The notes under the pieces are model-generated. The model made no database searches and was not told the DNA's origin. It saw only the letters and a program-made list of their open reading frames with translations. Of a stretch of DNA of 64,000 nt, positions 27,200-55,600 are shown piece by piece. Each line of letters starts with the position of its first letter. Position 1 is the first letter of the stretch. This DNA comes from Selaginella moellendorffii. Lineage: Eukaryota > Plantae > Lycopodiophyta. The DNA is taken from contig NW_003314294.1 in assembly GCF_000143415.4 (NCBI RefSeq), forward strand, positions 687,453-751,452, read 5' to 3'. Both the position numbers and the translations under genes were made by a program.

Positions 27200-28795
27200 T
27201 CATGGTTGACCGCTGGTTTTGGGAGGCACAATGACCATGCTTGTGCTTCCAGATTGCTGGAGAGTTTTGGTGATGGAAAGATCGATGTTAAACGCTGCGG
27301 ACACTACGTCTTGTGGCATGGCGCTGTAGATGGAATTGTTCCCGGCCAAGAACGACACAATTGGCCTGCGTTGAAACAAGTAATCAAACAAAGGCAAAGA
27401 ATGCCAAGGATTGTTAGAATGATCCCAGACATTACACAAACAAATAAGAGAGTTTGGACGACGACTTACGTGTGGGTGGTGAGAATGGAGACGAAGTCCA
27501 TTCCATTAGGACCAGCGATGGCGGTCGAGGGGAACGTTTTGGGGATGACAGCCACGGAACCCTCCTGGAGATCCAAGTCGAGAGCCCGATCACCAAAGCT
27601 ATTCACGACTTGGAGCTTGCCATTTCCTGCGTGCACGTAGATAAATTGGTGGCCATTGAGGAACCAGTTTGGAGCCACCATTGCACCCTGAAAATTCAAA
27701 TAAAAATCATAACAAGGAAATAAAGGTGGTACCTTGCTCAATCGCACGCATTCAGCACCCAACCCAACGTATTTAAGGATTGGCATCTTGAGGCTGTTGA
27801 GCTCACGAACTTCGCCACCTCGATTGACCTGGTAATCAGGAGTGGCATCTGCATAGTGGTAGACAAAACCCGCATTCTTCTTGCTCTGACCTTGATCTTG
27901 CCCAGTGCCTGGGTTTTGGCTTTGACGGTTCTGATCCTGGTTCTGGGCCGATGAACTCTGGTTCTGGTTTTGGCTTTGGCTGCCTGAGTTATCCCTTGAA
28001 AGATGATTAGACATGAATTTGGAAGATTTGGGTGGCATCACCAATCCACTCTCTTGCTGACTCTCAAGTATCTTTTTCACAACCCCTTCTGAAGTCTCCC
28101 AAGCCTGAGAAAGGATCTTGCTGCTGAATCCCCGGACAACGCTTCCCGATCCACCCTTCTCCTTGCCTTTGTTTCCAGCCAAGAAGAACACCTAAAACAA
28201 AAGTGTCAACTTTTTGCAAGGATTTCAACAAGTATATATTGTCACCTTTTCTGAGATGCGCTCAAGGTTGAGCTTCATATCTCCCACACAGATCACAATC
28301 GCGTCGCTGGCTCCATTATTTCGCCACCATGTTGCAACACCCGGAGGAAGAGCCACAACATCTCCTTTGTCGAGCTTGTAAACGTTCTCCTTGTTGTTCA
28401 TATCCATTGGGTTGATCACTCCAGCATCCACATTTCCTGGTTTTCATTACAAACACCAATGCATAAAAACATATATGCACGAAAATCTAAAATCCTTGGA
28501 AAATGGGGATCAAACCTTGGATTACGACTTTAATTGCCGGGATATCCACGTATGCCGGCATCAAAAGCGCTCCCGGCTTGATTGTGATTCTTCCAGCGGC
28601 AATGCTGGCGTCTTTCATGGCAGGAAATGATTCCCCTGTCCACATCTCGATCATTCCCCCATTTCCTCGGAACACAGTCTTGGGCTCCTTGGGCTTCAAA
28701 TCCTTGAAACACTTGACATCCTCGAATGGATCGCTACTTGCAACAGCAGCAGCAATCGTCAAAACCAGGAAAACCACTATAAATCTCGCTGCCAT
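27200..28795 (-). CDS. 11S globulin/legumin-like bicupin storage protein with signal peptide and Q/N-rich linker; 5 exons
   Basis: Two cupin domains (PGALLMPAY..; KGDVVALPPGVATWWRN; GAMVAPNW..FIYVHAGNGKLQVV; SFLAGNNSIYSAMP..VVSAAFN); GT-AG introns. Confidence 0.88.
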
Positions 28796-30999: not shown

Positions 31000-33400
31000 A
31001 GTGGAAAGGATACAAGCCTTGCACCTTTCACCAAAAGCAGATCACCAGATACCTGTCACCTATTGTATATGCAACCGACCCCATCAACTGACTTATGAAC
31101 AAGGTGATCTCCGTCTCACCTCCCGCTTGCCAATGCGGGCATAATTTCTGTTGGCATTGTTGGCACCTCTGCCCATATTCCTCATCCTCTACGTTTTCGT
31201 GTTCTCAGCACATTCCGCATTCGGGAGCCTCAACATGTTTGCGGAAGATCCCAATTTCAAGCTTGATGCCACCACGAAGCAGGTCGTAGTTGCTCGATTC
31301 TCCTCTCTCATAGATAAGGAAATCCCTTTGGGGCTAGACTATTCTATGAGCCTGTCTTTCTTTAACACTGTTCAGCTTGCAAACAGCAATTCGATTGTCC
31401 TGAGCATGCTTGTGCGGGATCCTTCCATTTGTCAAGCTGCTTCCAAAGTCGTGAATTCGAGCATGCTGCGGGATGAACGTTGGTCTCAGAGCTGGAGCTG
31501 CTTATGAACAGGACCTATGGAGCTGCATATACCATCTCGGGACAGCTTCAAGTCGGTTACCATATCAAGGGTATCAGTGCTAGAGGAAATGATGGTTGCA
31601 CTTGGCTCCGGCAAATTCCAGGATTGATTATAACTGCGATGGCTACACATAACACGATACTCTGGAAAGCCGCACCATCCTCAACACGTTACACGCCAGA
31701 TGCAAGCTCACCTCACGGGATCAGGCTTACGAGCTGGAGATGCAACAGGACTGCAAAGTGTTGTTGCGGGATTTGACTTTCAACAGGAGCATTTGGCCAC
31801 CAGTTTTACTCACTGCTTATACGGGCCCTGGCTGCTCTTTAGTTCTTGGACCCGATGGTCATGTGGTATTGCATGGTCCCACGGGAAATCGGTTGTGGAG
31901 TAACCCAGGTACATCTAGTCCCAATATCTCTACTATATTGAGAGTGCAGAACGATGGGAATCTAGTAGCATACAGGCTTCATCAATCAGAAGGCTTACGT
32001 GCGATATGGAGCACTGGAATACCGAGTGAGCCATTTTGATGCTATAATTTTTCTCGCTGACAGCGTAAGCTCCAGGTGCACCAGGTCCACGTGGGTTGAG
32101 TTCACCAGGTGCATCTCCAGAATCACCACGCAAAAAATCACGGACCCAGATAATACTGATCCTGTCGTTGGTGCCTTTTACTGCATCATTATCATGCGTT
32201 CTGATCGTCGTATATTGGATACACAATAGGAGCAAGGCAGGCGCAGGTACTTTACCGTTCATGAATGTTGTTTCATCTCTGAAACTCTTCGTATATGTTC
32301 ATCAGCAACGCGTATAGAACTTGCGGAGACCAAGGCATACTCTTACCAAGAACTCAGTGAGGCGACAATGGGATTTAACGCCCAGAATGAAATTGGAGAA
32401 GGGGGATTTGCAGTTGTCTATAAGGTAAATCTAAAAGTTAACATCCTTCATTGTTTCGTTTACATCCCAGTAAACAGGGAATGTTGGAGGGACAGACCGT
32501 TGCAATTAAGTACCTGAAGTTCCATTCTGAAGAAATTCAGTGCCATTTTGTTAGAGAGGTCAAAACAATTTCTGCCCTCCATCACACAAATCTCGTTAAG
32601 CTGCAAAACGACTATCAACTATTAGTGTACGAGTACATGACAAGAAAAAGCCTCCGACATGCTTTGGATGGTAAGCCTTAAATTTCTCGTTTTAGATTCA
32701 GTCTCTACAATATTTGCAGAAGCAGAAATGTAACTGTTCGGAAGACAAGATTTGAAATATGTCTTGGAGTTGCAGAAGGATTGGCGTATTTGTGCTCAGG
32801 GAAAAACATTGTTCACAGGGATATAAAACCTGGCAACATGCTACTTGACGAAAGGTTTCAACCGAAAATTACAGATTATGGCCTGGTGGAGCTCATACCG
32901 GATGGCAAAACTCATTACACCATAACACCAGCAGGAACCCGTGAGTGCATTTTACACCTTATGAATCTTCTCTCTGACTATTTGTAAGTTTTTCAGTGGC
33001 TACATCCCTCTGGAATATGCACAAGGATAGCTAACTTTCAAAGCTGATGAATACGCATTTGGGCAATTTATACTGGAGGATGAAACACTAGAAAATTATA
33101 GAAAGAAGTCACTCATTATATATTGATATGGAAATGTCTCTTAAAGATCACGGTGAAACAGAGATCACCTTGTTTATAAGTCACTTTAAAGTAGGTTCTT
33201 GGGGTTGCATGGTGACTGATATATGGCAAATTGCTTTTCAGGGAACAGGTGGAGTCTTGTCTCCTTTTAAGCCATCGATATGCCCACCACTACCAAACTC
33301 CACTCATGCATTTTGTTTGCTCGCAGCCAAGCTTTGTCACCAGAGATCTTTAGAATTGTGTTTGGAACCTGCATCCTCAATTGGGAGCTTTCTTTATGTT
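31000..33400. pseudogene. F-box gene 3' fragments flanking the lectin kinase (31000-31126 minus; 33148-33278 plus; 33285-33400 minus)
   Basis: Translate to GETEIT...PFKPS and MHEWSLVVVG, homologous to 37902-38110. Confidence 0.7.
31133..33080 (+). pseudogene. Bulb-type (G-type) lectin receptor kinase pseudogene
   Basis: Signal-like N terminus, LVLGPDGHVVL and LRVQNDGNLVAY B-lectin motifs, TM, YSYQELSEAT..IGEGGF, IVHRDIKPGNMLLD; frameshifts and an in-frame TAG near 33028. Confidence 0.8.
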
Positions 33401-35722
33401 TGAGAGTGTGAAGTGGAGTGGCTTGAGGCTTGCAACACCCCATGTAAATACATTCAGCTGAGAGTTTTGGTGTTGTTATTGACACTTTCAGGGGTAACAC
33501 TTTCAGGGGTAACGGTCCTTATTACTTTAGAATTGATAGATAGATAGATTTAGCATAATGTCATGTCGTCACACTCTCTTGGAGGTCAAAATCCATTTTA
33601 TGGGCAACTTTATATGCTAGGTATATAAGAAGTCACAAATATAAGGCATCAAAACCCATTTAATACAAGTTATTAATGAGATTTATTATTATATCTTGAT
33701 ACACTCCTCCATCATATTAATTTATATGCATAAGCTTATAGAATGATGTATGAAATGGAACAAAAAGAACTTTATGAAATAACAATTACAAGCTGTTCTT
33801 TATGTGGTGTTTATATGTTACTAAGGAATGAAGGAATTAATTATTAATGCTATAGTATACCACAAATAAATGATGTTACTATTGTTTTTATTAGAAGAAC
33901 CATGAAAGTTATATATATCTTATGGCAAATATTTATAGAAAGATTTTAAAACACTTGATGTTAATTCCCTTGATATTTCCTTTTGGTAAGATACACAATG
34001 ATAACCACATTACTTCTAGATTATGCATATTGCTTATTTAAAAGAGACACATTACAATTAAGTTTTGACCAAATCTTGTAAGCCAACAACTTTAATTAAT
34101 TTTGGTTAATCAAGTGCTTAATTCAGGACCAGGATGATCCAACAAGACAAAGATAAAATAAAACCTGCTTAGCCACCTATGTAGAATATTATTTATGAGG
34201 CAGCAGCATAGCCTATGGCATGCTTGATCGTAAGTTTCTCAGGGGAATTCAAGGGATTTGATTGATAGGCATGTGTTTCCAGGTGAAATTCAAGGCACTC
34301 ATCCTCCCGAATCCTAGGTGCAACTTGTAGATGCGATCATGGAAAGGGCAATGGCTATGGTTTTTCATCCAATTCTTCACGACACAGAAGTGTATAGACC
34401 AGTGCAATACTTTGTAACAGCGAGACCTTGGCTGGGTAAGCATACTATTCTTTGCTTGAGGATTGGAACTCCACATTTTCTTTGTTTTTTTTTTCTTGGC
34501 TAGATCTTTACAATACCAGGATACGTCCTGTTACTCAAAGCTACCAGATCGAACTTGATCCTTCTCTAGTACATTAGAAACTTTCCGAAGATATACTTCA
34601 TAAGGAATGTACCATCTAAAGCTCCATTTTTTTCTTCATTTGCTGTTCTAAGTTTGCTGCTTACAGATTTTTATGTCTATCTCCCTACACACTGGGAAAA
34701 GTGTCGTGTGTGTGCAGGAAGTGGCAATATGCTATTTGCAATCCCGTCTTTTGGCACTTGGCATGCTTGAGGACATGGCAGGCAAGAGCTCTTCTTTCTT
34801 CTTTCCACCTTTTTCATGATTTTGCTGTGATGGCCTAACTTCATGGCGTTGAAGAAAACAGAAAGATATTGAGTCAGGACTATGATAGCTCTTAGCGAAA
34901 AATGTGGCATCATCGTCCCAAGCTTCACTTGGTGGTTTCCTTGCAGTTACTCTTAAGATCTTCGAGTGACTGATGTGCTTCAAAAGCTAGGGATTAAAGT
35001 ACAAAACACGTCACTCCAAGGACCTTTGAGTCCTACTTTCACCATCAATACAGTGTATAAGGAGGTTTTATATTAAATATTTTCACCTCCACCAATTTTC
35101 TATTGAGTGTGATTCTTGCTCCATGCATTGTTTGTAGTGCTGAAAGAAATTCTTGATATAAGTCTAATGAACAAATAAAAAGGCCTGTCTAGAATAGTCC
35201 AATTCCAATTCCAGAAATGGTTTTGAGAGACTTATATTATAACTATGACATTCAAAACAGTATTTGTTAACAATATTTTCAATAATGAGGAGTTGCTAAA
35301 CTTTCTAGGCCACCAAATCCACTCAATGGCAGCCAGGGTAATTGTCAAAGGGTTATTTATATAATCACATTTTAACACTGATGTTTACTCTTAACCAATG
35401 GAAGCAGAAAAGAAAGTGTTATGACGTATATCACATACAAAGTGTTGACCAGCATTGATATTCAACCATTTTGCAGTGGAGACTAGTTGTTGTGTTACTT
35501 GGATTTGATAATTCTTTTTAATGAATTTGATAATTTCTTTTGAGGAAGCACATCCTTATAATTATTTCATCATTTTTTCTTTCAAAGTGGAATTCAATAT
35601 TTTTTGTTTTGATATTATTCCAATGTAGTTTTCAATTTAACAAAATCAATCAAAACAGTAATTTGAATATTCTTTTTTTAACTGGGTGAATTCTAACGAA
35701 GAACCCTAAATATTTTCCCACT

Positions 35723-36909
35723 ATGATGCGAGCTATGGTGCTTGAAGCGCCTGGAAGCGCTCTCAAGCTCACGGAGCTCCCGATTCCAGAGCCTCGCGAC
35801 GGCCAGGTCCGCGTCAAGGTCTCGGCGTGCGCTGTGTGCCGCACGGATCTCCATGTGGTAAGCGCCAGGCTTTGATTTCCTTCCAAAAATCGCCGCGCAG
35901 GTCGACGGCGAGCTCAAGGAGCCCAATCTTCCGATAATCCCTGGTCACGAAATCGTGGGACTGGTGGATAAGATCGGGCGAGGCGTGGATCCTTTGCATT
36001 TTTCAATTGGAGCTAGAGTGGGAATTCCTTGGCTGGGGAGAACTTGCGGGAGCTGCAGCTACTGTGTGGATGGAACTGAGAATTTGTGTGACGAGCCAGG
36101 CTTCACAGGTGAGAAAGCTTTCAAGTTCTTTATTCTTCGTTCCAGTTCTTCTTTGCATGGAAAAAGATTCTTTCTTGCAGGCTATACGATCGATGGTGGC
36201 TATGCCGAGTACGCCGTTGCGAACAGTGCCTACTGCTTCTCCCTTCCGGAGAATTACCCGGACGTGAAAGCCTCTCCACTCCTTTGCGCCGGTCTCATCG
36301 GCTATCGATCACTAAGGATGGCTGGATTCACGCCTGGAATGCCCAAACCCCGCAAGTTTGGAATCTATGGATTTGGAGCTGCTGCTCACATCGCTGCTCA
36401 GGTACACCGAGCTCTTCGACCGCTCTCGAATCGTACAAAAGCTTTGGATCTTCCAGGTGTTGAGACACGAAGGTCATGAAGTGTATGGTTTCACTCGACC
36501 GGGCGACGTAGAGGCACAAGCTTTTGCTCGAAAAGTTGGAGCCACTTGGTCGGGCGATTCCACCGCGTCGCCTCCACAACTCTTGGACGCCGCCATCATC
36601 TTTGCTTCGGTGGGATCGCTGGTACCGCTCGCTCTGGCAGCCATTCGCAAGGGCGGGGTGGTGGTTTGCGGCGGGATTTACATGACTCCAGTCCCCTCGA
36701 TTCCATACGCGGCGATCTGGGGCGAGAGGAGAGTGGTGTCGGTCGCGAATCTCACGCGCTTGGATGCCATCGAGTTCTTGCGAGTGGCTTCGAGCATGGA
36801 GATCAAAACGGAGACAGTGGAGTTCAGATTGGAGGAGGCAAACGAAGCGCTGCGAGCTCTGAGGGAAGGGAAGCTCAATGGGGCAGCAGTTCTTGTTCCA
36901 GGGATCTAG
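35723..36909 (+). CDS. Zn-dependent alcohol dehydrogenase of bacterial type (MDR, CAD2/AdhA-like), 338 aa; exons 35723-35857, 35901-36108, 36181-36401, 36457-36909
   Basis: VCRTDLH, PGHEIVG, RVGIPWLGRTCGSCSYC..ENLC, PLLCAGLIGYRSLR, GIYGFGAAAHI and LDAAIIFA..GERRVVSVANLTR; three GT-AG introns (43, 72, 55 nt) give one open frame. Confidence 0.92.
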
Positions 36910-36912
36910 GTG

Positions 36913-37810
36913 GAAGTGATCTCGTTTGACGGCACGGGCTTTGACAACCTGACGGTATTAAGACGACTTTGCTACGACTGTGTACCATATGGCTTAATTG
37001 TTTTTCTCCAGGCATCTCAACAACGGTGTGATTCCCACTGCGCTGTCTACGATGCCAAAACTATTTCACCTATACGTGATTTTGCGAGTTGCCACTGCTC
37101 ATGATAGTTTTAGTCTTCGCCTTCGTGACAGACTGCTGGAAGACAACAACTTTCCAGGAGCCATACCTCCAGAAATCGGCAGCTTGCCACAGCTGAGAAT
37201 CTTGTGAGAGTTCTCTCTGTTTTCTTTCTTTATGGAGTTGATTGAGCTGCAGATTCTAACTTTTGCTAACTGACAACGACATAGTAATAAACTTGAGGGC
37301 CTCGTACCTGAAACCATCAGTCGCCTGGCTTTCCTCCTCGAGCTGTATGATGGTTTTGATTTTGATTGTCTTACGCTAACTGATGAATATTTGACCATCT
37401 TGTCTGCTATGCAGGTTGCTCCTGCTTTTTCTTCTCTGATACCGTTTTACCAGCGATCAGCGATCAATAGTTTAAACCTTGTCGGACAGATTCCGTGAGG
37501 CAGCGTGAAAGTTTTAAAGACAAAACTTTTTCTTTGTGACTCTTGACATGGTCAACATGCCGGTTTCTGGAGAACCACTTGAATGGTTGCATCGACGCCA
37601 GCCATTGAAACTGCGGTGGAAGAATATGAAGAGTTTTGTCTTGATAGATTTCTTGGCAACTCCACGATTGACCGTCAAACGCCAAAACTTTGAGCTGTAT
37701 CATGTGTGTGTCAAAGTTGGCACCCTGGTGCTCGGATCAAGCCAAGAATTTCTTTGTGATCACAACAAAGTTTTGTGAAAACGCTTATTTACGATGTTCA
37801 ACTCCAATCC
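36913..37810 (+). pseudogene. Collapsed remnant: LRR-RLK fragment (36913-37610), P450 fragment (about 37630-37697), PPR fragment (about 37725-37806)
   Basis: Matches the reverse complements of 24960-25920, 20060-20125 (FCLDRFLGNSTID..QNFEL) and 19440-19545 (GGATCAAGCCAAGA). Confidence 0.75.
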
Positions 37811-37901: not shown

Positions 37902-39197
37902 TCATAGTGGATTGAATGATGGCTTAAAAGGATACAACGCACCACCCCTTTGGTGAAAAGCCGTTCGCCAGATACCAGTCACCTCATTGTAAATGCCACC
38001 CGAACACCCTTCAAAGTGAAGCATCAAGAAGGTGATCTCCGTCTCACCTCCCGCCACTACCAAACTCCACTGATGCATATTGCTTGCTAGCAGCCCAACT
38101 TTTCTCAGATTTGCCGGCAGAATCTCTCTAGGCATTGTTGCCAAGGGTCGCCATTGTCTGGATGCTTCGTCCAGATAGACAAAACCAAGGGTTTGTGCAT
38201 CCAGTATAAAGTTCGCAAGCACCAGTTTTCCTGAAACCCAGTGAACACAAAACCAAGCATAAAAAGAAAAAGAAAACATAAACTTACCGGCACAGTAAAC
38301 AAGTGAGGTGTTATTGTTTCGGCATCCGTTGTATGGTTCTTGATGCAAGCCCATGGGAAGACTCGTCCAGGTTGCCAAAGTCGCCACCTTGCCATCTGAA
38401 TCCCACACGTTGACGCACTTGAGTGATCTGGTGTTGTTCTTTGCGATCGTGATAAAGTAGAGCTTGTTCTCCCGTAGAAGCATGCAATCGTTGGCGTCAT
38501 CAAAGGAAGTCTGGGCAATCTCATTCCCGTTTGTGAATACTCGACAAGACGAGACCCATTTGTGAACTCTGGAATCATAAACTTGTAGAACTAGATGGCG
38601 TGCACCTACATACGTTGTCTTGATTCCCTGAACACAAACCACGGAAAACCAAGGCCTGTCGTCACTACCAACTGAAGATTGGATAGCCACGAAAATTATG
38701 GTTGGCTCAGAACCAGGTGGTGGAGGCAGCTTCACCAGGGAACTTAAATCTAAGGGGTTGCAAACCACAGCAGTCCCTAAGGTGTTCAAGGGGAAGTATG
38801 CAAGAACAAGCCCGGCAGAAGACACACAGATACTTGCTGTTTCCATCGTTGTAAACATCTCGATCATCTTTCATGAAAGAGGCCTTGAATTTCCATCACA
38901 GAGACCAACACTGCAAAAACCATCCATGATATACCACTGCCCATTGCAAAACCTGTGAGCTTTGCTATATCCCAAGCCCTGGATTGCGGACTTCCAAGTC
39001 TTGCAGACGCTCTTTCCACGGCAAAGTGCCGGCAGTGGCAAGAAGTTTAGAATGTGGAGCTGGAGTTCCAAAGGCAGCTGGGACCAGCTGGGATGATCCA
39101 GAGCACCTGTAGTTCTACGCCTCACCTTGCGATTCGTGATCATACCATCCCAGTGCCGCTTTTGCTTCTTCTCCGAAATATTGATAAATGGATCCAT
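37902..39197 (-). pseudogene. F-box protein gene with a single in-frame TGA (38873-38871)
   Basis: WSQLPLELQLHILNFLPLPALCRGKSVCKTWK F-box motif; ORFs 39197-38871 and 38867-37902 are in the same frame; one probable short intron at about 38230-38287. Confidence 0.75.
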
Positions 39198-52699: not shown

Positions 52700-55600
52700 T
52701 GTTTTTCTTTTTCAAAACTTTGTTTTGGTCCCAATCGTTGCTGCTGTTGGTATAGCGGAGATCCCTGTGATTTAGAGTTACTTGCCATGATAGGAAGACA
52801 AGAATTACGGGAATGTATGGGTAAACCTCTCTTTTTTCTAGATGCACGCTAAGTTTTTCTCTGTTTCTTTCTTTTGTAGAACGCTGATCAACACGAGATT
52901 GAGCGGTAGCTTGCCGGAATCTAACAGGCCTCCAGCTCTTGTAAATTTCATTTAGATCGAAGCCTGATAGCCTCAAGTATCTTTGGATATACAAAATCAA
53001 GTAACTGGTAATTGTGCTAGGAATCTGCAAACCTGTGGTTTCAACGGGAGTATTCTCTTATTTCTGTAAGTCAAGATATTCCCATTGTTTCCTTTTGGTG
53101 TCTAAACAGATCTGCGAACTTATGTTTCTAGAGCTTTGAACGGAAACTTTCTGGATGGAAGGATTCCCCCAACTGTTGGCGAGCTCCCAGTGATCTCGTT
53201 TGACGGCACGGGCTTTGACAACATGACAGTATTAAGACACATGTACGACTTTTGCGACGACTGCGTACCATATGGCTTAATTGTTTTTCTCCAGGCATCT
53301 CAACAACAACAATCTTTCCGGTGCGATTCCGACTGCGCTGTCTACGACACCAAAACTATTTCACCTGTACATCTTTATTAGATTTTGCGAGTCGCCACTG
53401 CTCATGATATCTGTTCTCTTCGCCTTCGTGACAGACTGCTGGAAAAAAACAACTTTCCAGGAGCCATACCTCCAGAAATCGGCAGCTTGCTACAGCTGAG
53501 AATCTTGTGAGAGTTCTCTCTTTTTCTTTCTTTAGAGTTGATTGAGCTGCAGATTCTAACTTTTGTAAACTGACAACAACAGGAGACGCGATAATAATAA
53601 ACTTGAGGGCCCCCGTACCTGAAACCACCAGTCGCCTGGCTTTCCTCGAGCTGTATGATGATTGTCTTACGCTAACTGATGAATATCTGCAGACATTTGA
53701 CCATTACTCTACTTGTTGGGAACTTGCCAGACTTCTGCTTTGCAAAATCTACAGCTCATGTGAGTTGCTCTTGGTTTTTCTTCTAATAGGCCTCTGATAC
53801 CAACGATCAGGTTAATCAATAGTTTTCCAAGGGAAACCTTGTCAGACAGATTCCAACGGGGCTCTCCTGCCTTGAGGCGCCGTAAAAGTTTCAAAGACAA
53901 GAATGTTTCCTTGTGACTCTAACCTGCAGGTTTCTGGAGAACCGCTTGAATGGTGGCATCGGCCGCGAGTGATTGGAACTGGTTTCGGTGGAAGAATCTG
54001 TGCCAATCACAGACGGTCAGGTAAGAGTATGGATACGCACAAACTTTTTTCGTAAGTGGCCTTTGGCTGAGATACTACTCTTGTACATGTCTTACAGGAA
54101 GTTCTGTTTGCAACGACAACAATCCTGACAAGTTTGTGAGAGTGATAGAATATAGAAACCTTCAATCGGTGCGGTATAACGAGAAAACTTTGCTACCAGC
54201 TTCTTTGCCGAGAAGAATGAAGTGGTAAAGTCTATTCTGCATATCAGTGGATATGCGCTATACAATTCATCACTCCATTCTTCTTAGACAGGGTTGACAA
54301 CGATACGGGGCAACATTCCTCGGCACTTCACACTACTCTGGGCGACTTATAGCTTCGTCATGACGAACGCAAACCATCCATAAACAGGTCCTTTTCTTCT
54401 TCGTTTTTTTGTTTTCGTCCTGGAATGCTAGTGTTCTTTTCTTTATTTTCCTCAGGTGATAGCCAAACAAACAAGTTTATGTTTGTTGCACTCTCTGCAT
54501 CTACGTCGGAGTTTCAGTTGCGATAGCGGGTCTCTGTATCTTTTTTCTCGTTATGAACAGAAAGCGGACGAGGAGCCCATGGTGAAAGCTGACTTTCTCA
54601 TTTTTCTTTTTCTCCTTTGGTTTCAGCAGCTTTGGGAAGATTTCTCCCAAGTTCAAAGGTGGCTTAAGAAACTTCTCCAGCCACCACTTGATTGGTGTCG
54701 GTGGCGATAGCAAGGTACGGAGCCTTCCTTCTCTTACAAAATGCGTGGAGTGGGAGTTGAATTAAAAAAGGAGAAAAATGGGTTACAGGTATACAAAGGA
54801 CAGCTGCACACAGGATCAGAAGTTGTGGCAATCAAGCGAGCCCAGAAAGAATATCTACAAGGCGTCGAAGAATTCCGACCTGAGATCGAGCTGTTTTCAC
54901 GCTTGCACCACAAGAATCTGGTGAACCTCATCGGCTTTTGTACAGATGATGGAGAACAGATGCTCGCGTACCGGACTTTTAAGAGACCATCTCTAGGGTA
55001 AGTGCTGCTTCTCTTCACTTTGCATTTCTTGGTTGGGAATAAGTTGTATAGACTGACAAGACAGCCTCTAATGCTGCAGAGCAAGCTCTCAACTGAAAGA
55101 CACGTTTCTCCATCGCACTTGGCTCTGCAAAAGGGAAATACCTTCACGAGCTGGCGGATCCTCGCATTATCCACTGAAACATCAAATCCTCCAACATTTT
55201 ACTGGACAAGAACTTGGTGGCCAAAGTCGCGGGCTTGGGCCGCTCAAAGCTGGCGCCAACTTGTAGCGACAAGACATATACCAGTATCCAAGTGAAGAAA
55301 CTCTGGTATGTCTACTTTTCTACATCTATCAGCAAAGAGCGATGTCTACAGCTTTGGAGTGGTGCTCATCAAGAAGCAGCCGATTGTTCATCGTGAAGGA
55401 GATCAAGGAGTCGCTCCCCTGGGGTGGTGTTGCCTTGCTGCTCTCTTTCATGGACAATCCGGCTGTGCATGGAAGATTCTGACCACAAGATGAGAGCTTG
55501 AGGAGATGATCAAGCTGCAAGAGGTGCATGGCTGATCACGAACAGAACTGTGACAGTGACGGGAACGAGGCAGCCGAATAGAGCAGCTTCAACGTTGGTC

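Follow-up and report, generated by a model that had tools for sequence, protein, structure and literature searches.

Yue et al. (2012) list 57 families transferred from bacteria to plants (PMC3493653), and these are the described cases that most resemble the gene reported here: bacterial-type metabolic enzymes with later intron gain and vertical inheritance. Most documented bacterium-to-plant transfers map to nodes older than the vascular plants, either early land plants or streptophyte algae (PMC3493653). The same study describes a zinc alcohol dehydrogenase (ADH) family that was found from a moss genome, is represented in Arabidopsis by the orthologue AT5G63620 and had its origin traced to high-GC Gram-positives (PMC3493653). 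The spikemoss family described here is a different one, with neither a moss nor an angiosperm member among the matches listed.

At the level of the enzyme, the closest relatives are the bacterial members of NCBIfam TIGR02822 (adh_fam_2), a family that is equivalent to CDD cd08298 'CAD2' and whose members are often auto-named 'propanol-preferring alcohol dehydrogenase' by JGI. To our knowledge no TIGR02822 member has been characterised, and we know of no enzymology for any of them. A search for a solved structure within the subfamily found none, and the closest solved structures are those of the AdhP-type tetramers 1RJW (Geobacillus stearothermophilus ADH) and 1LLU (Pseudomonas aeruginosa ADH). 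The NADPH-dependent aldehyde reductase Ahr/YjgB (NF047908) and the plant CADs have the same fold and zinc chemistry.

The gene analysed here is LOC9638964 (SELMODRAFT_417113), a nuclear gene of Selaginella moellendorffii that is already annotated, as an uncharacterised protein; a literature search found no paper on this gene and none naming TIGR02822 as a plant transfer. It lies in a stretch of 64,000 nucleotides that we refer to as the window. A sequence-only reading of this DNA had proposed a bacterial-type ADH that was transferred to a plant and then acquired three introns. Our analysis supports the bacterial affinity and points to a far older event than that proposal implied.

Gene structure and expression

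The ADH gene consists of four exons on the plus strand which, when joined, give a CDS of 1017 nt that encodes 338 aa plus a stop codon with the frame intact upon local translation, so that the open reading frame proposed from sequence was re-derived in full. Exon 1 (35723-35857) provides 45 codons, including the catalytic-zinc ligand Cys39 together with Thr41 in CAVCRTDLH, and exon 2 (35901-36108) encodes His61/Glu62 (PGHEIVG) and the structural-zinc residues Cys 94, 97, 100 and 108. Exon 3 (36181-36401) contains the catalytic Cys150 (LLCAG), a plant-only insert of six residues and the cofactor loop GFGAAA, whereas the remainder of the Rossmann domain, with Thr201-Arg202, is encoded by exon 4 (36457-36909), which has 150 codons followed by the stop at 36907-36909. 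All three introns are GT..AG introns on the same strand: intron 1 (35858-35900) is 43 nt long and in phase 0, intron 2 (36109-36180) is 72 nt and in phase 1, and intron 3 (36402-36456) is 55 nt and in phase 0.

In transcript contigs of runs X1, X5, X6 and X13, each from a different public study, precisely these 43, 72 and 55 nt are missing. Intron 1 is spliced out in the X1 and X5 contigs, intron 2 in X5 and X6, and intron 3 in X1, X6 and X13. The gene is real and expressed, and all three junctions are present in RNA, which was one of the checks that the sequence-only reading had called for. The X1 contig keeps intron 2. This intron is in frame and stop-free, and readthrough adds 24 residues, giving the form represented by RefSeq isoform X2 of LOC9638964 (P0271). 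Retention would place these 24 residues in the catalytic domain, and the intron-2-retaining isoform is probably unproductive.

The 5' ends of the contigs fall between 35719 and 35724 on the plus strand, with X1 starting at 35719 and X5 at 35724, right behind adaptor letters, implying a very short 5' UTR. Given these contig starts, at about 35719-35724, and a stop codon in the same frame five codons ahead of the first ATG, the protein has no presequence, in agreement with the earlier statement that a targeting peptide is missing. The telobox-like AACCCTA that had been pointed out just upstream of the gene does occur, at 35702-35708, but we reject it as evidence. It carries no weight because the heptamer is not above chance frequency (four occurrences in the window versus 6.75 expected) and the full telobox octamer AAACCCTA, sought in the whole window, is absent. 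The G+C content is 57% in the ADH CDS versus 29% in the region upstream.

Genomic copies and neighbouring genes

A search with exon 4 gave a 100% match to P0151 (EFJ21696.1, 334 aa), which is the present model from residue 5 onwards, i.e., from the third ATG at 35735. There are two further copies in the Selaginella assembly. LOC9633654 (SELMODRAFT_406708) is 99% identical, lies on another scaffold of 4.1 Mb and is probably the other haplotype. LOC9633393 (SELMODRAFT_429997), on a third scaffold, is degraded, with scrambled, frameshift-like stretches in its protein model, and is likely to be a pseudogene. The protein records of these other-scaffold copies are P0387/P0388 and P0152/P0389/P0390.

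The neighbours in the window include a plant-type Cupin_1 gene (27466-28191, minus strand), a weak B_lectin-like ORF (31740-32039, plus strand) and an F-box gene (37902-39197, minus strand) in which the F-box domain scores 36 bits and is accompanied by a big C-terminal ORF without a Pfam match. Immediately downstream of the ADH gene, beginning 6 nt past its stop codon, is a fragment of about 700 bp of an LRR receptor-kinase gene (36915-37628, plus strand). Its paralogues at 53189-54000 (plus strand) and 25911-25406 (minus strand), with 74.5% and 80% identity, contain introns, and the fragment seems to be without their upstream exons. Upstream LRR exons, which would place the ADH gene inside an intron, were sought by tblastx and none were found. 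The ADH transcript contigs stop at 36944, within the stretch shared with LRR kinases; this contig end may reflect the assembly graph and not where the transcript really ends.

Family membership and predicted chemistry

P0151 scores 318.7 bits against the TIGR02822 model, for which the curated cut-off is 283.5, and its plant kin score 355.4 (Cryptomeria), 352.2 (Ginkgo), 348.2 (Psilotum) and 343.8 (Diphasiastrum). When each exon is searched singly, TIGR02822 is the best NCBIfam match every time, with 30, 62.4, 71 and 106.9 bits for exons 1-4. The Pfam domain ADH_N (PF08240), also precomputed for P0151, is matched by exon 2 alone with 50.5 bits versus a gathering threshold of 23.5. The Rossmann domain PF00107 is at 18.6 bits with exon 4 alone versus a gathering threshold of 31.8, and many bacterial members of the subfamily are likewise without a PF00107 call; the cofactor domain aligns with that of 1RJW end to end.

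The catalytic-zinc residues Cys39, His61 and Cys150 and the structural Cys94/97/100/108 match the ligands in 1RJW and are invariant in an alignment of plant and bacterial sequences, and Thr41, Glu62 and the GFGAAA (GxGxxA) cofactor loop are conserved across both groups. Judged from this alignment, the catalytic residues are all intact. The bacterial TIGR02822 members have the same length and zinc ligands, many are 63-68% identical to the spikemoss protein, and they have in common with it the motifs CRTDLH, GIPWLG, LLCAGLIGY, YGFGAAAH, FTRPGD and SVANLTR; the motifs quoted in the earlier reading are all present as well. In contrast to the bacterial genes, the plant gene is nuclear and has three introns, and every plant member contains inserts of two and six residues, the latter within GFTPGMPKPRK (36324-36356), that no bacterial member has, as well as an EGH motif that is absent in bacteria.

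The AdhP-type structures 1RJW and 1LLU, at 185 and 167 bits, align end to end with the spikemoss protein and have both zinc sites, yet they belong to another subfamily: on the corresponding model NF006940 the spikemoss protein reaches 138 bits versus a cut-off of 344. The second-best NCBIfam match, NF047908 (Ahr/YjgB), is at 155 bits versus a cut-off of 470. True plant CADs (2CF5, 5VKT and 1YQD) are at 95-108 bits, far below the 185 bits of the AdhP-type and the approximately 470 bits of bacterial TIGR02822 members. We therefore reject an identity as true CAD or plant ADH1 on these scores, and the assignment to a bacterial zinc ADH subfamily that had been made from motifs holds.

In medium-chain dehydrogenases, an Arg following a Thr that replaces the NAD-selecting Asp goes with a preference for NADP(H). 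Since Thr201-Arg202, an Arg after a Thr as in the family at large, stands where 1RJW and other AdhP-type enzymes have this Asp, the sequence suggests that NADP(H) is preferred over NAD(H), a preference likely to be common to Ahr. The predicted reaction is most likely aldehyde or ketone reduction or alcohol oxidation, and the protein is a cytosolic zinc-dependent medium-chain dehydrogenase/reductase of the TIGR02822 subfamily, made without a presequence.

Orthologues in other vascular plants

With exon 4 as the query, every match listed after Selaginella comes from a bacterium or a metagenome, at 64-68% identity, and exon 4 searched against cluster representatives also gave only Selaginella and bacteria. 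The first of these searches is limited to proteins no longer than 1.75 times the query. Its length window was widened by using a stop-free reference (36316-36906) of which residues 48-197, corresponding to exon 4, were scored, and the ceiling was 345 aa. The plant kin are 351-421 aa long and, because they exceed this ceiling, the blank result for other plants is not evidence. The full-length protein is itself 68.5% identical to its best bacterium, i.e., as similar to it as to other plants, and fast evolution in the Selaginella lineage explains why a simple search makes it look purely bacterial.

The full-length search with P0151, from which the 120 best matches were listed, has plants on top at 494-528 bits and the best bacterium at 479. 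The plant matches are P0272, a Logan cluster with 40 members (528 bits); P0273, Cryptomeria japonica LOC131041209 (526 bits); P0274, a transcript from run SRR32617114 (519 bits); and P0275, Diphasiastrum complanatum O6H91_12G071400 (494 bits); P0293, a EukProt transcript, is also among them. Cluster members include Ginkgo biloba Gb_12798, Picea sitchensis ADE76966.1, Taxus chinensis, Wollemia nobilis and Psilotum nudum. When the plant proteins are combined into a profile (alignment A1), a search with it recovers the same plant clusters at 625-727 bits, followed by a gap and then by bacteria from 564 bits down. Orthologues are found in Diphasiastrum, Psilotum, Ginkgo, Picea, Wollemia, Cryptomeria and Taxus, a distribution that takes in a second lycophyte order, Psilotum, Ginkgo and four conifer families, and the Selaginella protein is 66.7-70.3% identical to these other plant proteins. 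Those of Cryptomeria and Diphasiastrum sit on chromosome-scale plant assemblies.

No angiosperm, bryophyte or alga is among the best 120 matches listed in the word-filtered full-length and plant-profile protein searches, and it is from these protein lists of 120 best matches that the gene is judged here to be absent in bryophytes, algae, angiosperms and most ferns. The database searched includes NCBI nr, UniRef and EukProt and is the source of the Selaginella, Ginkgo and Psilotum records. No other eukaryote appears among the listed matches, and a look-up in the ESM Atlas returned bacterial clusters only. P0274 (351 aa; L087-L089; runs SRR32617114, SRR32617127 and SRR32617133) is a spliced transcript that falls in the plant clade and branches near Psilotum and Diphasiastrum. 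In gymnosperms the first exon also encodes an N-terminal extension of 50-85 residues that the Selaginella protein does not have, and this extension may be a targeting peptide.

Protein-to-genome mapping indicates that the Cryptomeria (L085) and Diphasiastrum (L086) loci each have four exons, with introns at the same positions and in the same phases as in Selaginella: the first past ...CRTDLHV in phase 0, the second within the codon for Gly in FTG/Y in phase 1 and the third past ...HIxxQ in phase 0. The two internal exons have 69 and 74 codons in all three genera. Introns 1, 2 and 3 measure 43, 72 and 55 nt in Selaginella, 363, 334 and 421 nt in Diphasiastrum and 18,835, 236 and 174 nt in Cryptomeria, so that the first intron of Cryptomeria japonica, 18.8 kb long (L085, 3289-22123), occupies the position and phase of an intron of 43 nt in Selaginella. 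With the same positions and phases in all three genomes, the introns must be older than the divergence of lycophytes from euphyllophytes.

Phylogeny and bacterial relatives

Three trees were computed: a FastTree tree of 388 family members, an IQ-TREE tree of 100 rows under LG+C20+F+G4 PMSF with a quick search, and a tree of the same 100 rows under LG+F+G4 in which support was assessed by SH-aLRT and 1000 ultrafast bootstraps. The 11 plant rows group as a single clade in each of them, with support of 99, SH-aLRT 99 and SH-aLRT 99.1/UFBoot 100, respectively. The gymnosperm part reproduces the species tree, Ginkgo,(Picea,(Wollemia,(Cryptomeria,Taxus))). Selaginella is on a long branch as sister to all other plants, with weak support, such that the gene tree does not unite the lycophytes, and the overall plant topology is roughly that of the species tree.

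With the family rooted on divergent members of TIGR02822 itself (P0082 and P0142) rather than on a true outgroup, the plant clade is nested in successive bacterial groups with UFBoot values of 82, 94, 95, 92 and 95 (LG+F+G4). The enclosing bacteria include Hyphomicrobium spp., an alphaproteobacterial MAG and metagenomic sequences; the immediate bacterial sister of the plants varies between trees (UFBoot 82). P0351, the nearest bacterium, is 70.9% identical to the non-Selaginella plants, whereas its identity to bacterial members has a median of 67.1% and goes down to 49.8%. Relatives in GTDB at 53-63% identity are spread over at least 12 phyla. The sequence-only reading had expected a gene nested in bacteria with a patchy distribution among plants; the nesting is found, and among the matches listed the plant clade spans lycophytes, Psilotum and gymnosperms. 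It had also held that a vertically inherited clade across green algae and land plants would speak against transfer. Half of this picture is seen, since a vertical eukaryotic clade exists but covers only non-flowering vascular plants among the matches listed.

The ADH genes of the nearest bacteria lie on dense, intron-free, ordinary bacterial contigs. In the contigs closest to the plant clade, a DUF502 gene (PF04367) is located upstream of the ADH gene and overlaps it by 4 nt (L090, 5390-6984; L091, 5390-6987; L092, 2640-4237), forming a conserved operon-like pair.

Origin of the plant gene

We consider it probable that this zinc-dependent ADH reached plants by an ancient, single transfer from a bacterium into an ancestor that preceded the living vascular plants, and that intron acquisition, vertical descent and loss in angiosperms followed. 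The capture of one bacterial gene would predate the last ancestor shared by living vascular plants, and the three spliceosomal introns and two inserts would then have been gained on the vascular-plant stem. The gene would have been inherited vertically in lycophytes, Psilotum and gymnosperms, accelerated in rate in the Selaginella lineage and apparently been lost in angiosperms. The order of events in the sequence-only reading, transfer first and intron gain later, fits the bacterial nesting and the later introns; the recent, Selaginella-level timing that it implied does not, given orthologues with the same introns.

Several other origins can be weighed against these data. A recent transfer into the Selaginella lineage with fast intron gain is what the exon 4 search would suggest, as it yields only Selaginella and then bacteria at 64-68%, and the protein is as close to its best bacteria (68.5%) as to other plants. 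However, that search is blind to plant kin above its length ceiling, each of the three introns recurs in Diphasiastrum and Cryptomeria at the same position and in the same phase, and plant monophyly is supported at 99-100 with the two- and six-residue inserts common to plants, so that such an event is hardly credible. Independent transfers into separate plant lineages are excluded alongside a Selaginella-specific transfer and contamination. Bacterial contamination or an assembly artefact, which a bacterial-type protein and a CDS of 57% G+C amid upstream sequence of 29% might bring to mind, has next to no chance of being correct: the three introns are spliced in four studies, a 99%-identical copy lies on another scaffold, the flanking Cupin_1, F-box and LRR-kinase genes are of plant type, and orthologues with common introns lie on chromosome-scale plant assemblies. 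The argument from introns and plant neighbours that had been made against contamination holds.

Descent without horizontal transfer, from an ancient eukaryotic or an endosymbiont (mitochondrial, alphaproteobacterial) gene with many losses, could draw on the observation that the nearest named bacteria, Hyphomicrobium, Geminicoccaceae and Benzoatithermus, are Alphaproteobacteria. It is nevertheless very improbable, as it needs losses in nearly every eukaryotic lineage when no other eukaryote is among the matches, and the plants sit shallowly within one bacterial subgroup, at approximately 70% identity, in a family whose bacterial members differ by up to 58%. A transfer that predates vascular plants altogether, into early land plants or streptophyte algae, followed by loss in bryophytes and angiosperms, is unlikely but deserves more weight. 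Most documented bacterial-to-plant transfers are at such nodes (PMC3493653), and the absence of the gene elsewhere is judged from ranked match lists; against this, no bryophyte or algal protein stood out in the plant-profile search although nr, UniRef and EukProt were covered. As a tentative refinement of the ancient single transfer that we favour, the capture may have fallen on the vascular-plant stem itself, with a soil bacterium as the donor. The gene would then define tracheophytes, with its introns and surface insert fixed before the lycophytes split off, although we hold this narrower version to be somewhat less likely than even.

Were capture on the tracheophyte stem correct, the transfer would be dated to a node with few documented examples, the gene would represent a reductase step kept by non-flowering vascular plants and dispensable in flowering plants, and it would offer a first biological handle on TIGR02822. 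A practical lesson is that a length-limited search with one exon concealed all of the plant orthologues. What appeared to be a fresh bacterial import is in fact old: three introns common to lycophytes and a conifer show that the gene has descended vertically for more than 400 million years. Ancient bacterial genes in plants are a known type of event, and the case is a further example, unusual in its distribution. It adds a well-delimited member to the set of ancient bacterium-to-plant transfers and highlights an enzyme family that counts thousands of members in bacteria and whose gene non-flowering vascular plants have kept under constraint.
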